DNA from: Lepidodermella squamata
Taxonomy: Eukaryota; Animalia; Gastrotricha
NCBI GenBank assembly: GCA_047495785.1
Contig: JBLDXI010000010.1
Location: forward strand, 1,984,001 to 2,048,000
DNA: 64,000 nt
Direction of reading: 5' to 3'
A model generated the notes under the pieces. The model made no database searches. It was given only the letters and a program-made list of their open reading frames with translations, and was not told where the DNA came from. Positions 39,135 through 64,000 of this stretch are shown piece after piece; the stretch's first letter is position 1, and the number at the start of each line of letters is the position of its first letter. The position numbers and the translations under genes are program-made.

Positions 39135-41730
39135 GGGTCTAAATAAGTGCACCACCTAAAATGAGGTTCCAGCACTAAATTTGTGAGTGCGTCCACCTAA
39201 AATGCAAACAGGCGGCACTAAATCTTCGCGCCACCTAAATAATGAATCCAGCACTAAATAATCGGTGTGGCACTAAATAATAGCTTAGGCGCGCCGCCGA
39301 GCAATATTTAAGGCGGCTCAGTCATCATATCATCAACTGCATCATCATCATCTCGTCATTATTATTTCTTGGTTATTATTCTGAAATGGAGGAAGTGCCC
39401 CTCTTAATCATCGATACGGCCGAAAATCTGCCGCCGCCGCAACCAGCCAGTCGTCGACGCGGCAAGGAGCAGGTCTGGACGTGTGTTCAACAGTTTGAGG
39501 ACGAGGAGGCTGCCGACGATCACGTCGCGGACACCGGCACAGCTTGGTGGTGGAATAACGGCCGCTCGTACCTCACCAACCGCGGCATGATGCACTACTT
39601 CGACTGCTCACACCCTGGTTGCGAAAGTAAGCTCCGAAAGGTTATTCATGCCGATTCGCTGTACGTGTCGCTGGAAGAAAACGACGTCAACCATGATCAT
39701 TCGCAACCGAAGAAAGAAAAACAACGCGGTTTGCCCCCAGCAACTCGGCGCATCATCGATAAGCTTTTCCTTGACGGTAAAACAAAGCCTCTCTCGATTT
39801 TAATGGCGTTCAGGGAAAAAGGAATTCCAGAGCCGAAGGATTCGCAACTCTCGAGTTACTTGGCCACCCTTCGGAAGAAACACCACGGCCCGACGAAGGT
39901 CAGCATCGCCGCGCTACGCCATTTTGCTGAGGAGCACTCCAAGGAGTCTACAACGTCAAGGGATGACCCTTTCGTAGTGTCCTCCTACTTCAACTATGAT
40001 CAAATTGATGAGAAGAAAAGCGTGTGTCGAATCGCACTAACGACGCGCCGGCTCAGTAAATACGCCAAGAAGGTCGGCGCACACGACCTTCACATCGACG
40101 CGACGTACAAGACCAACGTCAACGGTTACCCGGTCATCTTGGTTGGCTTCAGTGACAAGGTTCGTATTGCTGTCGATTCTTATCAATTTTTTTTAATTTT
40201 TTACAATTTCCTCATTAGGACCGACATTTTCACCCGATTATGGTGGCGGTGTGCACCGGCGAGGCTGAGGACGACTACGAGTTCGTGCTGAGAGCGGTCA
40301 AAGACCACTTGTCCGAATGGCTTCCGGCGCTCGCCGTCTCAGACGCTGCTAAGGCGATTAAGAGGGCGATCCGAGCAGTGTTTGCCGAAGTGAAGCACGC
40401 CATCTGCTGGTTTCATGTCACGAAAAATCTCAAGCAAGAGTATCTACCAACGATCAAAGACCCCAAGCTGCGCGATCAATTCAAGGACGACGTCTACTCC
40501 ATGCAACTGTGCTGGTCGCCTGCTGTGTTCCAGGTCGTGTCTCAGTTGTTTGTCAGCAAATGGGAGGCGGTGCCGGAAGCGGCGGCGTGTTTGGCGGCTT
40601 TCAAGAAGCAGTACCTGGAAAAGAACAACACGTGGTACCAAGGCTACGCTATCGGCTCAATGGTCAACAACAACGGCCAAGAAGGCAAGAACGGCCGCAT
40701 CAAGACCGATTACACCTTTCGGAGTCGTCTGCCCGTCATGCAGCTGCTTGAAGTTGCGAAAAAGATGCTCGGTCGCTGGTCGTGGGAGCGGAACAAGAAG
40801 TGCGTCAACTACAAGAAGTTCTTCACAGCGCCAACAATCAAGGACGAAGTTTGGGAAAAGGCGCGTGTCTGGGCTCGAGATGTTGGCACTGGTCTTCGAT
40901 CGCAGCCGAGCGGCAATGGAACTCTGTACGTGTGGACGAAGCAGTCAGCTTTGGCAGAAGGTGTTGCTGCTACTGCTGCTGCTGCCGCTGTCCCGAAGGG
41001 ACCCCCGCCAGCGAAGCGAGCCCGTGGTCGACCGCCGAAGTCGAATCCACCGAAGGACGAGCTGTCTCAAGCTGTCTGGGAAGCTCTCTTGGCAAGAAAC
41101 AAGCCTCTAGACAAAGATGTTGGCCCTCAGGTGGCTGAAATATTCTCGAAATTCTCGTGGCCTGATTTCGACTCGTTCTCCAAGTTCAATAAGCGTTTCG
41201 GGTGAGAATTCTTTCAAGTTTTTATGGCGTATTAATAGGTTATTTGTATTAATAGGATGGTTTTGATCGACGGTGAGCAGCAAGTGTGCAATTGCTGGAA
41301 TTTTCTCAAAACATACCACTGTTACCACGTCCTTGGTATACAGATGCGCCTGGGCGACGTTTCTTTCCCGGTCGAACTTGCCGAGCAGCTACCGCTTGGG
41401 CCTAAAGCTAAGCGAGGCCGCAAACGAAAAGCTCAACCCGCCCTGGTGGTCCAAGACTGAGCTATTTATTTTTAATTGTTTAATGAGCCATTCATCCGTA
41501 GCGAGTCGGATTGCTCAGCTGTAAAAGAAAGCAATGATTTCGTAATTTTGTAAACTAATAAATGATGATCTCTTGATGGTATATTCTCAGTTCTAATTAA
41601 AGCAAAATTAGGTGGTGGCTACGCATTTTTAGTGCTGGAGTTGTTGATTTAGTCGCAAATAGGATTAGTGCGAGTGACTTTCAAATTTAGTGCTGGAACC
41701 TTATTTTTAGTAGGTGCAGTTGGCACACCC
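39135..41730 (+). mobile_element. Full-length Mutator-like (MULE) DNA transposon
   Basis: Perfect 9-bp TSD GTAGGAAAT at 39126-39134 and 41731-41739; GGGT...ACCC termini; imperfect TIRs with repeated GCACTAAA motifs. Confidence 0.93.
39386..41460 (+). CDS. MULE transposase, 3 exons, apparently intact
   Basis: Exons 39386-40159, 40219-41201 and 41256-41460 splice in frame. LHIDATYK (D), VSDAAKAI (D), CWFH, NNGQEGKN (E), N-terminal C-x4-C...HxH finger, C-terminal SWIM CNC...CYH, AT-hook-like RGRPP. Confidence 0.92.
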
Positions 41731-51966: not shown

Positions 51967-54900
51967 TCACAAAACGTAGCGAACGAATGGCATGGCCATC
52001 ATCGAGCCATCATCGCCGACACACGCCATGTCGAGGCGGATTGATTTCTTGTTACCCACCAAAGCCGAAATCTTGGGATGATGCGTCTCTATCAGTTGGC
52101 GAATGGATAAATCCAACTGCTGCTGACTCTTCTCCTGTGACATCCGCGCCTTGTTGTAGATTACGTAATTGCCAATCGCAACCATACCAACTACGACGCC
52201 ATCCCGATTGAGTCTCTTCAGAATCTCACCCAGTGTAACTCCGGGATTTTCAAAGTTGAAACGGGTCCAAATCGTCCAACTCGGAGCTTTGGGAGCATAG
52301 GGTGGTTTCAACGTGGCATCACGAGGATTGCTCATAATCACAACAGGTTTGCTCAGGTCGAAATGGGTGTTTCTGAACTTGGATAACTGCGAATGGCCCT
52401 AGACGAATTTGATAAGTTCCAAGCAAACCAGACCAGCTACAATCGCTGTTGTAGTTGCAATAGCTGGCGTTATCTGTAACAACTTCAATCAACAATGAAT
52501 GACAAAAAAGATCGAACGAACCTTTCCAGCGATAAGTTTACTCTTCTGCCGATTTGCAGGTTCGATGAAGTAGTTCTCAGCCCGGCAGTTTGAAGCTGCG
52601 ACAATGAAGTCGAGGTGAAAATTGGAATCGTCATCCTTCTCGAATTCAATCGGGGTAATCGAACTGCCATCGATTTCAGCCTGCTCTGGAAGCTTCGCTT
52701 GTAACTCCGCGACCTTCGCCTTCATTTGCTCAGCTCGCTCTTCTTTCAAAATTTGCAAATCACGGTCATTTTCGGCAATCAAGGAATTGCCACGAGGTTC
52801 GAATTTCAGTTCAACCTTAGAAGCGATGGCTTGAATTTTCGACTTGTCCCGAATCTGGGTGATACCGAACAAGCTAGCGTAAAGATTGGCTGCTGAACTG
52901 ACGAAATCGACATGAAGCTCCTGTAAGAAAAGGTTCGAGAAACCTTAGAACTAGAGATTCAAACTCACATTGTCCAAATCAAAGTTCAAAGCTCGCGGGA
53001 ATCTTTTGGCATTGTCCCAAAATGGCTGCCCATCGGATCCAAGTTGATCCTGGGGGAACCTTTCGGTCAACTCAGCAATTTCCGAGTGAAATAACTCTTG
53101 AAATTTCGAGCAAGCCCAGCTGACGCACTGTTCGAAGTTGGTTGGTCGATTTTCTGCGGCGAGAAACTGCACCAAGCTCTCGACGGCTTCCAATCGTTCA
53201 ACTTGCTGGAGATTCGCCAGGAATTGCTCGCCCTCTGCCGCGTATCTTTTGACGTATTGAGCTGGCGAGACGAACAAATCGTGAAATTGTTCACGGGCCC
53301 AGTGAAGCGTATGCTCGATGGCGTTTGGGAAGCTTTTGATCGTACACTGGGCGTAGGACGTTTCGTCAGAAGCCGACAGGCCAGTCGAATAAGGCTCGGT
53401 CAAAGATTGCAATATTACCTAAAGAAAAAGGTTCCAGAACTTGATTTGAGGTTCAAAATCGAACCTAGAAAATCGAGTACTAAAACGCTTCAATTTAGCG
53501 CTACAAAGTTCCGAAGTTCCAAATTAGGATATATCGAAAAAGAAACCTTTGTGGATCCGGTTTCGCCCTTCGTCGCAGATTCGAACATTGGCTTCAAATG
53601 GTAGATGCAACGCTTGTCCAAGTACTCCCTAGCCTGGAGATTATCCAACGCGTTGACAACCGCATCCAAAACGTCGAAAAAATCTTCGTCGTAGATATCT
53701 TCGGTTTCGGGCCCAACTTTGTTCAAATGATACTCGATATTCAAATCGCGGTTAATTGCCTTGACCGCAGCAGCGGCAACCTTCGATTTAGGCTCTTTCA
53801 AATCGTTTTGCCGGAATAGGAATTGGCGGTTGAGATTCGATCGTTCGATGACGTCCATGTCGGTTGTAAGGAGCTTGCCAGCTTTCGAACAAGCCACGCC
53901 CATCATCGCAAAGTTTTTGAGTAACTCGCAGCCGATTGCGCCGGTGCCAACAACAAACAATTTGAGCTTTTCAAGCTTCTCCTGAAATTGCTGGCCGAAA
54001 ATTGCGATTTGGCTGGCGTAGCGACTAGGTTCAGATGGGAAGTCGATGAGTTTTTGCGTTTCAGGTAGACATTCCAAGGCGTCAAAGTACATGAATTGAT
54101 GTAGCGGGACAAATTTCCCAGATACAGCTTTGAAGACTTCTTGAGCCGCGAATCCTCCGATAACAGCGTTCATCGGGCACAAGTTACCGGTTGCTTGAAG
54201 AGCGAAGGCCTTAGCGATTTGCTTTTCGCTTTCTTTTTCGAAACGTTCAGAGAATCTTCGAGCAAATTCTTCGTTTCTAGCAGTTGGCGAGTCGCCGAAT
54301 TCGCCGAGCAAGCAGAAGGCGCGGTGGATCGTAGATTCCCGGCCCATTTTTCCGAAATCGGTGATTAGGAACCTAGGTTCAGCTACGGCTTCAGCTAGTG
54401 GCTTGAATGACATAGATTTGCTGGTTTTGACCTGCAAATAGAAAATTCATACAGGACCGACAATCCAACAATCCAAATTACCTGGGTAACTATGCATTTA
54501 TTGCTTGGTGGCATCTCGCAATCGGCCTCAATAGAGAAAATATCAGCGGTTATCGAAGCAGAGATGCGAAAAGGTCCCCAAGTTCGCCGATCCCCTTCCG
54601 CCCCAGAAACCGATCGATCTAGGGCGAATGTTACCAGATTGCCCTGAGCAAAACCCCTCGAACCCGTTTGCTCGACCAGCTTGACCAAATGAGGCGATGA
54701 CGGGTCGCTGCTACGGTTGATTGAACCGACAAGGCGAGACAGAGGCTCGCCAGCTGTTGGATCGATAACTTCGAATCTGTCGCCGAAATCGCAGAAGAGC
54801 TGGCCGAATAAACCGCGAGTTGACGCTAGAATGAACTTGACCCCGTTCAAGTGACACCATTTGCCAATTTCCTTTGTTTTTTCGTCAATCACGTGATCGC

Positions 54901-55371
54901 AGAGAACCACAACCTGAGCAAGTATAAATGTCCAGCAATTAAATTTCTATAAATATTGGAAATTTACGTGGAATTTGGAGACGAAATCCACGGTAAGGCT
55001 CTCGTCAGCCGCTTCCACGCGAACATAAGGGTTCAGCTCAGCAAATCGATTCCTGCTCGCTTCGGCTCGATTTTTGTTCAGGTCATTAGCGGTCAAATAG
55101 AACTTGAAAGATGCGAAATAAAATTTTGAAATAAAATTTATTAGATTTTTACCTGGGTTCCAAGATCCGAAATTTGCGTCGCTTTTGTGTCGTGAAGCGT
55201 GACAGAGCGAACGCCGCCTAAAATGACGTTTTTCGCGATTTCGGCGCCCAAGCCATTGAGTCCGCTGATGAGAACATCCGCGCCAGCCATTTTACGCATC
55301 GTTGACTCGCCGAGAGTGTAAAGCTGTCGCGAATACAAAGACTCGTCGATTGCGCTATTATTCTTAGTCAT
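51967..55371 (-). CDS. Divergent UBA1-type ubiquitin-like activating enzyme E1, 7 exons, about 1000 aa
   Basis: [42 protein letters not shown], catalytic [18 protein letters not shown] (Cys at 53344-53346), [25 protein letters not shown] and a C-terminal UFD. Exons splice in frame. Confidence 0.95.
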
Positions 55372-55677
55372 AGCCGCCGAGATTTACAAGAAAATTCGCA
55401 AATTCTGTCTAAAATTTGAAAATTCATATGATTTACTCGTGAGTAATGGAGATGGAGAGATGAATCGGCAGTTCTGAAATCTGAAATATCAGGTTGTAGG
55501 ATTTCAGAAAGGTCGAAGCCAAGGTCAATGAGAGTAATAAAATCCAGAAAAAAAACGAAATAGGAAAACTACCGAATCATTTATCGACTCTGTTTTTATG
55601 TTTTGGTAGCAAAATTATAAAATCTATAGCTTCGTAATTTAAAAAATTCAAAAATTTCAAAAAAATGTGCAGAGAAT

Positions 55678-56286
55678 ATCTTTTAGCGGAACCAAATTTG
55701 ACTGTTGCGGAATCTAATTTTAGATGGGCAATAGGTCGCTTTTCAAATATTTCCATAAAATATTTAAGGCAAGATAAATGAAGAAAGCGTCTTATAGATA
55801 TAATTACACGCTGATGAATAGGTTCTATGCTAGATAATTGAGCAGACAAAAAGTGAGCAACGAAAATTGAGCAAGGGCTTTTTAGCAACGATATGAGAGC
55901 AAACGAAATTAGAGCAAATTTAATAATTAATTGTAGCTCTTATTTGGCAGACCGTCATAACAGCAAATACCCAAAACAGCAAACGCGACAGAACAGCAGA
56001 AACACGATGCATCTTTTACATAGTAAGTTTTCGCTGTTTTGTCGCGAAATAAAAAATTTGCTGTTTTGTCGCATTTGCTGTTCTGCGAAGCTGCTGTTTT
56101 GTCGCCGTTTTGTCGCGGCATTATTTATTGTAAACACAATTTGTTCTAAAGTCGTTTTGCTCTAATTTCGTTTGCTCTTATATCGCTGCTCAAAAGCCCT
56201 TGCTCTATTTTCGTTGCTCAATAAGCATAGAACCTTGAAAGTTTCAAAAAGTGAAAATTCCAAATTTTGGCTCCGCTAAAAGATAG
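55678..56286. mobile_element. MITE with ATCTTTTAGCGGAACCAAA termini, containing a nested GGTTCTATG-family MITE (55821-56234) that itself carries an insertion
   Basis: Inverted ends; the inner element shares TIR and GAGCAA subrepeats with 34477/38999. Confidence 0.7.
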
Positions 56287-56923
56287 GCATTCTGGAAAAA
56301 CATTTAAACTTGAAAACATTTAAATTTTAAAATTCGAATTAAATTCTTTTGAATTTTGAATCGAAAATTCGAAATTATTTAATCGATTTAAATGAAAGTC
56401 GTCGATTTGTCACGTCTTTCCCAATACTATTTACAATTGGCCTCTCTGTGACAATTTTAGGCTTCAGAAGATGCCGATCTGAAACTCCGGGTAAAATAAT
56501 TTGTACTCTAGTTGACGGTCTAAAAGGTATAGGGGAACTGAAATAACAAGGTGCCCAATTATCGATAAAAAAGAAAATGTCTATAATTTTCGAAACATTG
56601 GAAAGATTTAGCACTGGAACCTTGTGCCAATAATCCAAACTAAAATTGAATAAAAATTATTCAATATTTCCGCTCTTCAATGCGAATTTTTTGCAAATCA
56701 GAATCATTATTATCGAAAAAAGGGAACACGTGCGCTAAGTGTTACGATTCAACTTTCACGCGGCCTCATCGCCAAGCACGTGCGACGTTGGCCGAGCCGT
56801 TTCAAATCTACTAAATAATATAAAAGTCAATAACGAATCTTGAATTCACTGTAAATCGATATATTCATTTCACGCAAAGATTTGATAGATCAATCAACAT
56901 TGTGTTCTAATCGAAAATAAATC

Positions 56924-57184
56924 ATGTCCGACCGCTTCGACATCACGTTCAACATATTCGGCCACGGTGAGCTGTACAGGTTGAACGTATCGCCTAAAGA
57001 CACGGTGCGTGACGTTATTCGAATGCTGCGATCAGTGGCTGGCGAGCAAGCCATTACGGACAGCGTCAACATTATGCATGGCAATGAACAGCTCGATGAA
57101 AATATGACGCTGGCTCAGTACGGCATCCAACCGCGCCACACCATCCACGTTATTCCGCGCATTCAAGGCGGCCGTCACGCTTGA
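56924..57184 (+). CDS. Novel ubiquitin-like protein precursor, 86 aa, ending GG-RHA
   Basis: Beta-grasp pattern aligns with ubiquitin: LNVSPKDTV, QLDENMTLAQYGIQ, TIHVIPRIQGG. TATA-like TATAAAA near 56819; intronless. Confidence 0.9.
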   Translation: MSDRFDITFNIFGHGELYRLNVSPKDTVRDVIRMLRSVAGEQAITDSVNIMHGNEQLDENMTLAQYGIQPRHTIHVIPRIQGGRHA

Positions 57185-58411
57185 ACGAACTCGCCGCGCG
57201 GTTTCGTCTCGCTGTCAAATTAAAACGGCTGCCTTTTTGTAAAAAAACCGAAATAATTGATAAACTTAAAATTCAAAATTTATTCAGTGGTTTTTTCGAA
57301 AATAAAAACTGTGACCAATTTTCCTACTTTGCTATAAATTAGAGTCGAACCACTATTTTTTCCAATTTGTTTTGAAACGCAAATCTGTTCATGCGGCGTG
57401 TCCTGTACCGTTTACTCATTTTATTATTTTTTTTTAGGGAATTTAAACTAATTTTTGAAATTAATCACACTGGGGACTCCACGATTTCACCGAAGAAATT
57501 TGTTCGGTAATTTTCGGTTTTTACTTGGTTGGACCAAATTTCTTCTTATTTTTTAATCCCATTCATAAGAGACATTTTTGATTACTGTTCTTATGACATT
57601 TTAGATTTTTCTATGATTTTTCTTGCCTTGAGATATTCAGTAAAATCGGAAATAATTAGTTCGCAATTTAGCCGCTAATTAACCGATATTTACTCGGGCA
57701 TTTAGGACCCTGGAACCTCCTATTCAGCCTAACATTTTCCATTGAAGCTTCCAATTACCGAAAAATGAAATTCAATGCGATAAATGCCACATTTTTGGTA
57801 AAAAGTATAAAAGGCGGGCTTTCTTGAAAATTATCGATATTGAAAAATGGCAATTATTCGTCCGATGTGACCTGAGTTGGTTGCCTCTCTTGCCAGAAGC
57901 TTCACGGTTTTTTGAGAGATGGTCCTTAAAATGGATCGAATTCACCGATTCCTGAAAAAAACATTGCACGACTATCTGAAACTCAAGGTTCTGTAATATT
58001 GGCACAAATCAATCGAAAATTCCGCAAAATCATTTCGGATCGCGGTTATAGCGGGACCTTCTCCGTAGGCGCGTTATTGACCTGATTCCCGGGCAAGAAA
58101 AATTTCCTATAAAGCCTTTTCACAGGATGGTGCCATGCAACCTCAAATCCTGTAAAATGCCAATTTCAAAACTGAGAATTTTTAATAAATTAGAGGACAG
58201 CATTATCATCATCCATTTTTTTTGATCTCGAACCGAATTGTAACGAAAATTTGAGAAATATTTCCCCCAGGCAAGATCTATATCGATTGGCAAAAATCGC
58301 TTCAAAAATTACTCATGTTTTATGAAAAAGTGCTGGGCAAAATTATTACACATAAGTACGTCATTATAATTATCCGAATTACGACTATAATTTTTATTTC
58401 CTAAATCGGAA

Positions 58412-58951: not shown

Positions 58952-59747
58952 ATGGCTTGTAATTTAACCGGCGCTCTTCGACTGCAACACGATTTGAACA
59001 AGTAAATACAACAATTTTAACACAAATTATTGTATAATCGAATTGTTTCCAATTTTAGGGTGCTTACGAATCCGCACTCATGCGGAACTGCGGCGCCGGT
59101 CGATGACAATTTATTCCAGTGGCGAGGCTTCATCTTTGGGCCGGCTAAATCGCCCTATGCTATGGGCATTTTTCGCGTTCAACTCGATTTCCCGCTAAAC
59201 TACCCTGCCTCGCCGCCTATCGTCAAGTTTCTCGACAACATGTTCCACCCTAATAGTAATAATTATCTTCATAGCATTTTTGAAAAAATTCCTAGACTTT
59301 TTTATAGATATTTTGAATAAATTTTAGATTTTTATATAAATTGGTAATTTCAAAAATTTAATTTTTTTAATTTTTCTATATTTTTTTATTCTTAATTTTA
59401 ATTTTAGTGAAATTTTGAAAATGTTTCAATAATTTATTAGAGAATAAATAAATTAAAAAAATTCAACTTTTTCGAACTGTTTTAATTTTTTTCAATGCTC
59501 GCCCGATTCTTCTACCTTAGTTAATTCAAGCGGTGGCGTTTGCGTCAGTCACTTGAAGCAAGGAAATTGGGATCCTAGCATGGATGTCGCCGCTATTTTG
59601 GAGTGTCTAGCTTCACTTTTGCTGAACCCGAATCCAAATAGCCACATTAATCGCGACGCTGCCGACTTGCTGCTGAAAAATCCCGCCGAGTACGAATCTC
59701 GCTGCCGCGAAATCGCCCGTCAAACCAGCCAACGGCCAAGGAGCTAA
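58952..59747 (+). CDS. Ubiquitin-conjugating enzyme E2, divergent RAD6/UBE2D-like, 3 exons
   Basis: Exons 58952-59001, 59059-59255 and 59521-59747. W..IFGPAKSPY..GIF, FPLNYPASPP, MFHPNINSSGGVCVSHL (HPN and catalytic Cys), SLLLNPNPNS. Confidence 0.93.
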
Positions 59748-59848: not shown

Positions 59849-62638
59849 ATGGGAAAAGACAAGAAGAAGAGCAAGAAGACCAAGGCCGGTGCGGAGGCAG
59901 CGCCTGATTCCAAGCTACAACCGGCTCCGATTGAAGAAAATCCGGCTAATAACTTGCCAGAAACTTTGGTTGCTTTGTCCAATGCGAAAGATGGAGAAAC
60001 TCCGAATCAGCCATCTTTGGTTCCAGGTTCTGAGCTCCCAGTTGAGAGCAAACCCGAAGCTCTTTGCCAAGTGGAACAAATGGTGGTTAAAGAGAATCCT
60101 GTTAATCACGAACTTGAAAGTTCGGCAGCCATGACTGACGCGATACCGTCTTCAGTTACCGAAGCTCTAGCACAAGGCGAGAGCAAGGCCGAAGCTCCTC
60201 GCCAAATCAAAGTTCATGAACCTGCTTTTCATGAAAGCATCGACTCACCCGAAAATTCAGCAACTATATCCTCTGCGAAAGATGAGAAAAAGTCACTTGA
60301 ACCTTGTTTTGTTGGCGATGCTGAGATCAAATATTCAGCTGTTGGCCAAGCCGAACCAATGGAACAAGAAGTAGAGAGCGCTCCGATAAGTTTCCAAGCT
60401 GAGAATCCGATCCAAGTTGGGGAGAACGTCGAAGCTCCTATTCACGAAGAGAACGTCGAAGCTCCTGTTCACGAATCTGCAACCACCAGTGAGCTGAATT
60501 CGGAAGTCGAAAAGGTTCCAGACGCAACTGTTTCGGAAAATGTTAGCACACGCGATTCTACGGTTGAGGAATCCCCGCAGGAACTTGGACAGGAACCTTC
60601 AGAGATTGTAAGCCAGCCTCGATTCGGCCAGTTGTCACAATCGGTTTACCACAATTCGCCCAAAGCTGTTCAAGATTCCGAGCCGAAGACGGAAGCTGGA
60701 AAGCAATCTGGCACTCCTTCGTCCCTTCACAGTAAAAAATCCGCGAAGTCCGCCTTTCAACCGAAAGATAACTCAGACCAATCGCCAGCTGAGCTGCCAA
60801 GCCCTGTTAACAAGAAACCGCACTTGGATATCGGCAAATCGCAGATGGATATCGAAAACCTCGCGAGCCCTGATCAGAAGAGCCACAAGCATCATCGCAA
60901 GGGCAGGAAGAACCAAGCGTCCGCGCCCCCGCACGATCCTGATGATGTCGAGTGGGCTGATGATAGCAGGAGCAAGTCTTCGTCGAGGAACGATAAGGCA
61001 ACCCGTCGCAAGGCGAACCAACGATCGAGCGACGACGAACCGCCTGCCAAGGCGAAGCTACCGGCTGCGTCCAATCAGGAAGCTGAGGAAAGGTTCAAGC
61101 AAAAGCTTGCCGAGTTTCAATACCGCGGCATGGCGATCAAGCCTGCTATCCGGCTTCAGAACGTTGGCAATACCGTAAGTTTTTTCTTACTTAATTTCTT
61201 AATTTAATTCATAGATTTCAGTGCTACGTCAACAGCGCTCTTCAGGCAATCCTGCCGATTGAAGAGTTGTATCGATACGTCACAAGCCATCCTTCTTCCC
61301 AACCTATAACTCGAACCGTTACCAAGTTCGTGAAGCTGGCCTATGAAACCCCAGGATCTTACCACGATCCAACCGATATCCGATCGGCAGTTTCGTCTCG
61401 CGTACGAACCTTCCAGATTGGCCGGCAAGATGACGCCATGAATTTTCTGGCGTTGGTTCTTCAAAAACTGCATGCAGAGTGGAACGAAATCGGCGAGCAG
61501 CCTCCTTTTCAAATCATTCAAGCTGTTGGCCAGGAATCTTGCCGCGACGTTGCCCAAAGTAAGCTAAATTTACATATGAAACTTCGTAACAAATTCTTCG
61601 AAAAAACAACAGAACATTGGCGTTACGATTCGAGTTGCCACATGTCTGAGATAACTCGGCTGTTGCGGTTCCAAGAAATCACGATCGCTAAATGCTCCAA
61701 GTGTCGCAAAGTCATTCCAGCATATTCGGCGTTTCAGTGCTTCAACATTTTGATTCTCGCGTTCAAAGAAGAAGATCGCAAACGGTCGCTCACGTTGAAC
61801 GACCTGCTCGAGCAACACTTTGCTGAGAAGGCTCGAAATTTCAAGGATGACCCTTGCCCGTTCTGCTATGAAAATGCTTTCAACCTGGAGGAGCGTGGTA
61901 TTGCTTCGTGCCCGCCGTATCTCATCGTTCAGCTGGCCAGGATTGAAGAGAATCTGATGACCGGGCGTCGGTCGAAGATCGATAGCCACGTCACTTATCC
62001 GAAGAGGTAGGATGATTGACCTTACGAAGTTGCTTTTTAATCTTTTTCCTAGGCTTGAGATTCCCGATAGCTCCACGAATCTTGCTGCTTACGAGCTCAT
62101 TTCCGTTATCAATCACTCCGGCTCACTGGAACACGGCCATTACTTCACCTATTCGAAGCGTGGCGAAGATTGGTTCGTCTTCAACGATTCCAGCATCGAA
62201 AAGCTGACGAGTAGCAATCACTTCTCAAACAACTCGAACGCGTGCCTGTTTGTCTATCGAAAAGTTGACCAGCAAATGGTTGAATCCAAGCCAGAACTCA
62301 CCGCAGATCTCGACCAGCCTGGCATTGAACCTCGCGCAAAATTTGACGAACCTATCACTGTTGAACAGCCTGTTTTACCCTCGCCAAGTGAGCCACCTTC
62401 TTTTTCTGATTATCGCCCTCTTAGCTACGGGTCTATCGAAGATGAGACCAACGAACCTGCGAATCATGATTGCAGCATTAACGCTCGATTACTCAACGAA
62501 GACGCCGAGAAGAAGCGACGAATCTCAAAAAAGGCTACGCTGATAGCTGTTGGCTTGGTTACGACCATTGGCTGCGGTGTTTTGCTGTGGTACTTCTTAT
62601 CTCGCTCTGACAACAAAGTTCCTGCGCAAAGCCCTTAA
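59849..62638 (+). CDS. USP-family deubiquitinase with acidic disordered N-terminus and C-terminal transmembrane anchor, 3 exons
   Basis: Exons 59849-61174, 61222-62006 and 62053-62638. Cys box LQNVGNT|CYVNSALQ, QDDAMNFL, His box HSGSLEHGHY...WFVFNDS; terminal hydrophobic LIAVGLVTTIGCGVLLWYFL. Confidence 0.92.
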
Positions 62639-62718: not shown

Positions 62719-63897
62719 ATGGCGGCTTACGTAATACCATGTGACAAGTTCGAGCCTGTATCGTATTCTGATTCTGATTTGTGCCATTTATGCGATTGTG
62801 AAATGTACTATCATACTGGGGGTAAGATTTACAGATTGAATCCTAAAATACGTTTTCCTTGTCTGAAATCTGAAACAGGGTTGTTTGGTAAATGTACGTG
62901 TTGCAACTGCCAGAAATATCTGCCTAGAAGCTTCAATTGCAAGAACTGTAATTTAATACTCGGCAATCATTCAAAGGAAGCAGGTGGGTGTTTCCAACTT
63001 TTTCCGATTTGAATTACTTTTGTATTGTTACAGTCATATCTTTCACGGCCGAGATGGACGGCTCGAATAAGCAGGTCTCAATCGCTCAACCCCAAGTTTG
63101 CTCTCGACCTGAGCCAGATGATATGGAATGGGACCGTTACGAGACGAAAGTTGTCAAGAAACGCCCTCCTGTTAAACCACCTGGTAAAAATTTGCCAGTC
63201 ACGTCCGGCCAAGTACTTGCGAACAATCAGAATGCTAAGGCGCTTGCAAAGCGCGGAAACCCAACCAAAGCTCCGAAGCCCTATGTCGAGGTGAAGCCGC
63301 CGCAAGAAGTCATTCATCTTGGTGTAACTGGCCTCAGGAATGTTGAGAACAACGTAGGGATCAACTGGCTTTTAATTGTCAAAGTTTTGCTGTCAGTGCT
63401 ATCTTAACAGCTTGTTGCAATGTCTAAGCCACGCGGAGGGTTTCAAACGCATATGCCTGGCAGAGTGTACCAAGAAGCGCGGCCCGCTGTTCAGCTCGAT
63501 CGCTAAGACCATTGAGGCTCTATGGTCTCAGGAAAAGGTGACTGATTCGTCGCTAGTGAAGCGGCAACTGGCGCGAATCGACAATAGATTCTCGACGAAT
63601 GAACACCACGATTTGCTCGATGTCATGATGGTCTTACTTCGACAGCTTCATGCCGAATTGAACGAGGGCGATACGGAAGCGTACCGAATTATCAATGAAA
63701 CCGACCTTCGGCGGATGTGTACAGGTGAGGAAAATAGAAGATTCGAGGCGCATTTTGTCGAAGGTTTAAGCTGCTATGTCGATCTTGAATTGCTGACCCT
63801 TACCAGTCGTCTGAGCGAAATTTCCGACGCAGACAATGTTTTTATAGCGTGGAATATTTTTCGATGCCCTTTTAGCTATTTCTCAATCCCCTCTTGA
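62719..63897 (+). CDS. Second USP deubiquitinase, probably with an N-terminal Cys/His Zn-binding module; 3' part unresolved or beyond the window
   Basis: Introns 62822-62878, 62984-63033 and 63354-63396 join the Cys-rich ORF in frame to GLRNVENN|CYLNSLLQCL...EHHDLLDVM. His box not in the window. Confidence 0.75.
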
Positions 63898-64000
63898 TGA
63901 AGCTATGCGTGAAAATATCGAAAAAATTGAAAAAGGGCTGAGTTATGGGAACAATTTGTGGTGCCACTACTTTTGGTGAGCGTGGGTGGTTTGCCACCCG

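Follow-up and report, generated by a model that had tools for sequence, protein, structure and literature searches.

A lysine-poor ubiquitin-like protein encoded beside divergent E1, E2 and USP genes in the gastrotrich Lepidodermella squamata

Genes at the locus

We report the analysis of a 64,000-nucleotide stretch of DNA from the gastrotrich Lepidodermella squamata (GenBank assembly GCA_047495785.1, contig JBLDXI010000010.1, positions 1,984,001 to 2,048,000), referred to here as the window, which has the character of an animal genome with small introns and carries genes for actin, membralin, NRDE-2 and a RhoGEF. Genes for a ubiquitin-activating-type enzyme (E1), a small ubiquitin-like protein (Ubl), an E2 and two USPs are packed within 12 kb of this window and their catalytic residues are intact; no E3 gene was seen within the window. 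The features of the cluster, in window coordinates, are:

51967..55371, minus strand: UBA1-type E1, at least seven exons; Pfam ThiF, E1_4HB, SCCH and UFD domains; catalytic Cys kept
56819..56826, plus strand: TATA-box-like motif TATAAAAG, about 100 nt 5' of the Ubl ATG; a candidate, read from the sequence
56924..57184, plus strand: coding sequence of the Ubl precursor, a single exon of 86 codons and a stop; from the open reading frame, Pfam, structural model and composition
56924..57172, plus strand: residues 1-83, the predicted mature form of the modifier, with RIQGG at its end; the tail aligns with LRLRGG of ubiquitin and the processing is predicted
57173..57181, plus strand: R-H-A C-terminal extension, read from the sequence and disordered in the model; probably removed, by analogy with other Ubl precursors
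57219-57224, plus strand: candidate polyadenylation signal ATTAAA, 35 nt 3' of the Ubl reading frame; read from the sequence
57301-57306, plus strand: candidate polyadenylation signal AATAAA, 117 nt 3' of the Ubl reading frame; read from the sequence
58952..59747, plus strand: divergent E2, three exons; HPN and catalytic Cys; Pfam UQ_con at 69.6 and 37.9 bits
59849..62638, plus strand: USP 1; intact Cys and His boxes, from Pfam UCH and translation
62988..64000, plus strand: USP 2; Cys box; Pfam UCH at 63376-63897; the gene continues past the end of the window

The reading frame of the Ubl terminates in GGC GGC CGT CAC GCT TGA, which encodes ...RIQGG-RHA-stop and, as the first-pass annotation of this DNA had described, the Gly-Gly pair and the three-residue tail behind it are read directly from the sequence. 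An in-frame TAA lies two codons 5' of the ATG and no AG acceptor precedes the ATG, so that the frame is a stand-alone first and only exon. The open reading frame is intact and its coding signature is strong: its GC content is 0.54, and 0.66 at third codon positions (GC3), against 0.32-0.35 for the flanks. Three sequencing runs from three studies, none recorded as RNA, contain the Ubl stretch; two of the three hold about 92% of the sampled words within 56900-57260 and about 70% over 56800-57400, a difference that fits either transcript-limited contigs or diverged flanks.

Upstream of the gene, the octamer CACGTGCG, which contains an E-box, occurs twice, at 56727-56734 and 56777-56784, 50 nt apart and 140-200 nt 5' of the Ubl ATG, and the window holds just these two copies. 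It was considered as a shared promoter motif and rejected, the count being not above chance (29 of 100 shuffles of the window reach it). Nested inverted repeats occupy 55677-56285, in the intergenic region between the start of the E1 gene and the Ubl; the arms at 55854-55918 and 56156-56220 are 65 nt long and 94% complementary and are flanked by a further pair at 55677-55699 and 56263-56285. The arrangement is suggestive of a MITE-like or palindromic element.

The E2 has its catalytic Cys in GGVCVSHL and finds its best PDB match in Ubc4/UBE2D, at about 66 bits; a search of 5.8 billion clusters revealed no protein with three 5-residue words in common with the main (first large) exon of this E2. 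The first-pass annotation had also placed a USP beside the Ubl, and Pfam UCH matches and the translations reveal two intact USPs next door. In USP 1 the Cys box is interrupted by an intron between GLQNVGNT and CYVNSALQ, and the His box, HSGSLEHGHYFTY, is intact. The N-terminal region of this enzyme, of about 450 residues, is without a Pfam match and its composition suggests that it is disordered. A hydrophobic helix, ATLIAVGLVTTIGCGVLLWYFL (about 62534-62599), ends 12 residues before the C-terminus, which suggests, on sequence grounds, a tail-anchored, membrane-bound deconjugase.

Alignment of the Ubl with ubiquitin

HMMER aligns residues 15-83 of the Ubl with residues 10-76 of ubiquitin, with a single two-residue insertion after G40. 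A manual alignment in the first-pass annotation, anchored on the Gly-Gly pair, had listed six substitutions, and all of these are correct in the HMMER alignment: K48 is replaced by E55, K63 by P70, R42 by N49, I44 by M51, L71 by P78 and R74 by Q81. The same alignment bears out the retention of R72 and H68, as R79 and H75 respectively, and the absence of all seven ubiquitin lysines, since K11 becomes E16, K27 becomes I32, K29 becomes M34 and K33 becomes V38; K6 is matched by I11 or by N10, according to the register chosen for strand 1. The sole lysine of the protein, which had been assigned to the sequence SPKD, is indeed there, as K25, and lies opposite S20 in the EPSD of ubiquitin; therefore none of ubiquitin's seven lysine positions can hold a lysine in any register. 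Lysine makes up 1 of the 86 residues here and 6.1% of the window's other coding sequence (P=0.029), such that the depletion is real and of moderate significance.

Extensions beyond the Gly-Gly pair are normal in Ubl precursors. Because of this, and because FUBI is already a single-lysine Ubl with a Gly-Gly end, the combination of the RHA extension with a single lysine is less exceptional than it might seem. The main interest of the protein is as the centre of a clustered and, to judge from the sequences of its neighbours, apparently private E1-E2-USP system.

Of the three arginines that contact the crossover loop of the E1, the Ubl is without two (R42 to N, R74 to Q) and retains R72. The positions of the I44 patch are hydrophobic (M51 and I77). 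Relative to ubiquitin, the Ubl shares the beta-grasp fold (TM 0.84), the C-terminal Gly-Gly, R72, H68 and hydrophobic positions 44 and 70, but its N-terminus is longer by 5 residues and 2 residues are inserted behind the helix; unlike ubiquitin, it is encoded neither as a polyubiquitin nor as a ribosomal fusion.

Fold and family assignment

Single-sequence AlphaFold2 modelling of the Ubl gives a beta-grasp with a mean pLDDT of 85.6, comprising strands at 5-11, 17-22, 48-52 and 73-78 and a helix at 28-39; the tail, residues 82-86, is disordered in the model, with pLDDT below 50. Ubiquitin accounts for all the top Foldseek matches of this model in the PDB, at TM 0.84, and the identities over the structural alignments are 26-28% for ubiquitin, 17% for NEDD8 and 18-19% for ISG15. 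Structure prediction had been proposed as a check in the first-pass annotation and the ubiquitin-type beta-grasp was what it returned; as modelled, the Ubl is a ubiquitin-fold protein with a flexible C-terminal Gly-Gly tail.

A profile search against Ubl families, proposed in the same place, gave no clear orthology to a known Ubl in either Pfam or phmmer. The best Pfam match is Rad60-SLD (PF11976; E=1e-7, 32.1 bits, cut-off 23.8), followed by ubiquitin (PF00240) at E=1.3e-5 and 25.3 bits, 0.1 bit short of its cut-off of 25.4. The match to the Rad60-SLD/SUMO profile is not discriminating, because its score is only slightly above that of the ubiquitin model. At E<=10 the Pfam scan returned only Rad60-SLD, ubiquitin, TmoB and Ubiquitin_2; URM1, UFM1, ATG8, ATG12 and UBL5 were absent. 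The first-pass opinion that the protein does not resemble these families, or NEDD8 or SUMO, agrees with the Pfam scan and the structural identities, neither of which yields a close match.

Orthology to a known Ubl, for example a detached FUBI, NEDD8 or SUMO, obscured by extreme divergence, was examined against the features that define each family. The Ubl is set apart from ubiquitin proper by an identity of about 31%, the replacement of all seven lysines and the tail PRIQGG, the defining features of ubiquitin being absent. At position 72 it has Arg79, where NEDD8 has Ala and where SUMO has Gln or Glu as its specificity determinant (PMC9378703, PMC12355090), and it consists of one domain of 86 residues rather than the tandem pair of ISG15 and FAT10. 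SUMO and Rad60-SLD proteins share with it the PF11976 match, which is the best Pfam match of the Ubl, and a Gly-Gly tail with a short extension, but SUMO has a long N-terminal arm and is served by SAE1/UBA2, UBC9 and SENPs, whereas the Ubl has no arm and lies beside a single-chain UBA1-type E1 and USPs. FUBI provides the closest parallel to the tail and the single lysine: it ends in Gly-Gly, has a single Lys, has no reported chains and is processed by USP36 (PMC8354635). It is, however, fused to eS30 and has its Lys at the K27 equivalent, whereas the Ubl is stand-alone, stops after GG-RHA, has I32 at the K27 site and Lys at the S20 site, a distinction drawn from the described features of FUBI. 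No eS30 or other Pfam domain was found in the reading frames 3' of the Ubl. Given these differences, the 17% identity to NEDD8, and neighbours that are UBA1-type and UBC4-like rather than SAE/UBC9 or NAE/UBC12, we consider orthology to a known Ubl such as FUBI, NEDD8 or SUMO very improbable.

Search for relatives of the Ubl

No match to the Ubl came from a word-based search across 5.8 billion clusters of proteins. When 1.84 billion representatives were searched exhaustively with phmmer, the best 150 matches were all multi-repeat polyubiquitins, which mask any single-domain relative scoring below about 71 bits; the best single polyubiquitin repeat scores 26-28 bits against the Ubl. No single-domain protein at about 71 bits was found among the 1.84 billion and therefore the phmmer library holds no close orthologue. 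Exact look-ups of the Ubl sequence returned no record, scans of metagenome and viral contigs with the back-translated Ubl returned no match, no viral ubiquitin-like structure was closer than 29% identity, and tblastn with the Ubl and with ubiquitin found no relative near the E1 genes at 88 loci. A feature search of the ESM Atlas yielded generic small ubiquitin-fold clusters alone. Among the collections searched, then, the nearest relative of the Ubl appears by sequence to be ubiquitin itself, at about 31% identity. We found no published description of such a cluster or such a Ubl; this is an absence of matches and not proof of novelty.

The best single-repeat match is to the divergent first repeat (residues 1-76) of a polyubiquitin-like protein, the tail of which reads CRIQGG. 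Its likeness to the PRIQGG of the Ubl is probably convergence.

Ubiquitin is among the most conserved proteins known, and a protein only about 31% identical to it, with no homologue elsewhere in the collections searched, might be a decaying or neutral duplicate of it, that is, a young relic whose reading frame is open by chance and whose neighbours are unrelated divergent paralogues. At 69% divergence from ubiquitin, however, stops, frameshifts and a lost fold would be expected of such a relic, whereas the frame is intact, the single-sequence model is a confident beta-grasp, the Gly-Gly pair is kept and GC3, at 0.66, is above the flanks. We regard a neutral relic as improbable.

The Arg72 pocket of the adjacent E1

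The best PDB match of the window E1 is human UBA1, at 323 bits, with UBA7 at 259 and UBA6 at 243. In human UBA1 the pocket for Arg72 of ubiquitin is formed by N606, Q608, S621 and D623, and UBA6 alters this pocket to H599, E601 and H614, so that it accepts FAT10 (PMC9378703). Canonical enzymes read GN.QVV.P.LTESYSSSQDPPEKSIPIC in this region; the spliced window E1 reads GSTK, followed by an intron and a rewritten stretch, such that N606 is replaced by Ser and Q608 by Lys. The crossover loop is also rewritten, at the place where canonical enzymes have SSSQDPPEKSIPIC. Contacts with this loop are made in ubiquitin by R42, R72 and R74 (review, PMC12355090).

Among the nearest cellular E1 fragments, 72 span this site and 71 of them have the N..Q form of the pocket, as does every one of the 13 giant-virus E1s in which the motif could be located. 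More broadly, over 96 columns with conservation of 95% or more among 120 relatives, the window E1 deviates at 12; in the other sequences the median number of deviations is 0 and the largest is 7. Judged by its sequence, the enzyme departs from the standard ubiquitin E1. With the arginines of the Ubl and the pocket of the E1 both altered, the pair matches what would be predicted of a private E1-Ubl couple. The pairing is not a simple one, for the Arg at position 72 of the Ubl faces a Lys at the Q608 site of the E1, a seemingly repulsive and non-complementary arrangement. In the E1 of NEDD8, an Arg at the place equivalent to Q608 rejects ubiquitin.

The Lys at the Q608 site may disfavour activation of the Ubl and, together with the hydrophobic I44 patch (M51, I77) and H75, which could engage ubiquitin-binding surfaces, it lends some plausibility to the Ubl being real but not conjugated; it would then act as a binding partner, regulator or decoy of the E1, E2, USPs or ubiquitin receptors, its Gly-Gly serving as a protease or recognition site. 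A free Gly-Gly with a short removable extension is nevertheless a hallmark of conjugated Ubls, and mere binding would have no need of the catalytic Cys residues in the E1, E2 and USPs. We judge a non-conjugated role unlikely, while giving it some weight.

The first-pass annotation had gone further in the other direction and proposed a mono-conjugated or chain-capping modifier. That role goes beyond what the analysis supports and the capping in particular is speculation, made less likely by the loss of R42 and R74. On a capping model the Ubl would receive its charge from the E1 and E2s of general ubiquitin metabolism and would terminate ubiquitin chains, the clustered enzymes not being specific to it; the retained R72, H68 and Gly-Gly, and the chain positions without Lys, are as such a cap would have them. 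Capping requires cross-talk with the ubiquitin machinery, however, and the lost crossover-loop contacts R42 and R74 (PMC12355090), together with the rewritten E1 pocket, argue against cross-talk; L71 is also replaced by Pro, and the altered pocket of the adjacent E1 suggests a private route. We give capping through the general machinery only a slim chance.

Origin of the cluster

The window E1 is 51-52% identical to fragments of cellular UBA1 and at most 46% identical to giant-virus E1s. Both the E1 and the E2 contain spliceosomal introns, and that at 53419-53548 on the minus strand falls directly after the Q608-position codon of the E1. Several unrelated eukaryotic E1 fragments leave conserved sequence at this same point, which suggests, from the sequences compared, that the intron position is old and shared; a position common to cellular fragments points to descent from a cellular UBA1.

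These observations bear on a further possibility, that the genes form a cassette within, or derived from, a mobile or giant-virus host-manipulation toolkit that is now resident in the genome. Metagenome-assembled genomes of giant viruses do encode UBA1-type E1s, and a MULE transposase is present at 40 kb of the window. The introns in the E1 and E2, however, and the cellular position of the post-Q608 intron, stand against the toolkit, as does the closer identity of the E1 to cellular enzymes. The viral E1 loci, moreover, are without the Ubl, E2 and USP cluster and have the canonical pocket, and none of the viral Ubls is closer than the 29% given above. A viral origin of the cluster was accordingly set aside as unsupported by the viral scans, viral Ubl structures and viral E1 loci, and the mobile or viral toolkit as a whole is, in our estimation, quite improbable.

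Some side observations may be recorded here. The MULE/Mutator transposase-domain reading frames lie at 39386-41205 of the window, about 11 kb from the cluster. Seventeen giant-virus metagenome-assembled contigs in IMG/VR encode UBA1-type E1s with 35-46% identity to the window E1. Nine metagenome contigs carry a UBA1-type E1, of 40-45% identity, with an E2-like reading frame within 1-3 kb, and no ubiquitin-like reading frame was found alongside on these contigs. On the contigs of the nearest E1 fragments (about 52%) the E1 has an SNF2 helicase as its neighbour; neither a Ubl nor an E2 or USP was found there.

A proposed conjugation system

The reading that we favour, with a confidence a little better than even, is that the Ubl is a modifier derived from ubiquitin and confined to one lineage, synthesized as a precursor and handled by the E1, E2 and USPs encoded next to it, a proposal drawn from the sequences of these genes. 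The Ubl would be translated as the 86-residue precursor, from which a protease, most plausibly one of the adjacent USPs, would remove R-H-A and expose Gly83. The adjacent divergent UBA1-type E1 would then adenylate the mature Ubl, form a thioester with it and hand it to the adjacent divergent E2, which would attach it to targets, and the USPs would detach it again. We infer the processing, the activation by the neighbouring E1, the conjugation and the mono-modification; the adjacency of the Ubl to the E1, E2 and USP genes is circumstantial support for a joint function.

The Ubl may act mainly as a single tag, without K48- or K63-type chains, because Lys is absent at every chain-forming position of ubiquitin. 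The first-pass annotation had held that such chains cannot be built, and for K48 and K63 linkages this stands, trivially, from the sequence; it does not extend to chains in general, as K25, Met1 or non-lysine residues could in principle provide linkages.

By analogy, the cluster resembles the ISG15/UBA7 or FAT10/UBA6 systems in its logic and would be a member of neither. The vertebrate ISG15/UBA7/UBE2L6/USP18 system likewise comprises a lineage-restricted Ubl with a C-terminally extended precursor, an E1 that is a paralogue of UBA1, and an E2 and USP of its own; ISG15, however, is a tandem di-Ubl with the tail LRLRGG and the genes of its system are dispersed, whereas the Ubl described here is a single domain ending PRIQGG, with its genes adjacent. 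In the FAT10/UBA6/USE1 system the E1 pocket is changed with respect to UBA1 at the same positions as in the window E1, which here carries Ser and Lys and a rewritten loop; FAT10 differs in having two Ubl domains and in ending in CYCIGG without an extension, and UBA6 in still activating ubiquitin and in the identity of its pocket residues. The physical arrangement finds its parallel in prokaryotic and archaeal Ubl operons (Caldiarchaeum Ub/E1/E2/E3/Rpn11 and bacterial Bil), in which Ubl, E1, E2 and deconjugase genes are clustered (PMC11354881). The genes of the present cluster are similarly side by side, but the operons encode small MoeB/Uba3-like E1s and JAB-type proteases, in place of the UBA1-type E1 with 4HB, SCCH and UFD domains, the introns and the USPs found here.

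The single-chain E1s of the UBA1 type are, to our knowledge, UBA1, UBA6 and UBA7 only, and we know of no change in the set of ubiquitin-like conjugation systems of animals for some two decades. We propose tentatively, at somewhat less than an even chance, that the cluster represents a fourth animal conjugation system on a UBA1-type E1, of independent origin in poorly sampled invertebrates, encoded as a compact cluster and without ubiquitin-type lysine chains. In such a system an E1 with an altered Arg72 pocket, an E2 and two USPs, all of them private, would be joined to a modifier poor in lysine, and the whole would amount to an independent natural experiment in the re-coding of E1-Ubl specificity. 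Its encoding in a single compact gene cluster would be unusual in an animal and would bear on the question of how functionally linked genes become neighbours in an animal genome, and the cassette could serve laboratories for orthogonal tagging. From the sequence, trypsin is predicted to leave an IQGG remnant of the Ubl, with a calculated mass of about 355.19 Da, in place of GG; the targets of the Ubl would therefore be mappable apart from those of ubiquitin.
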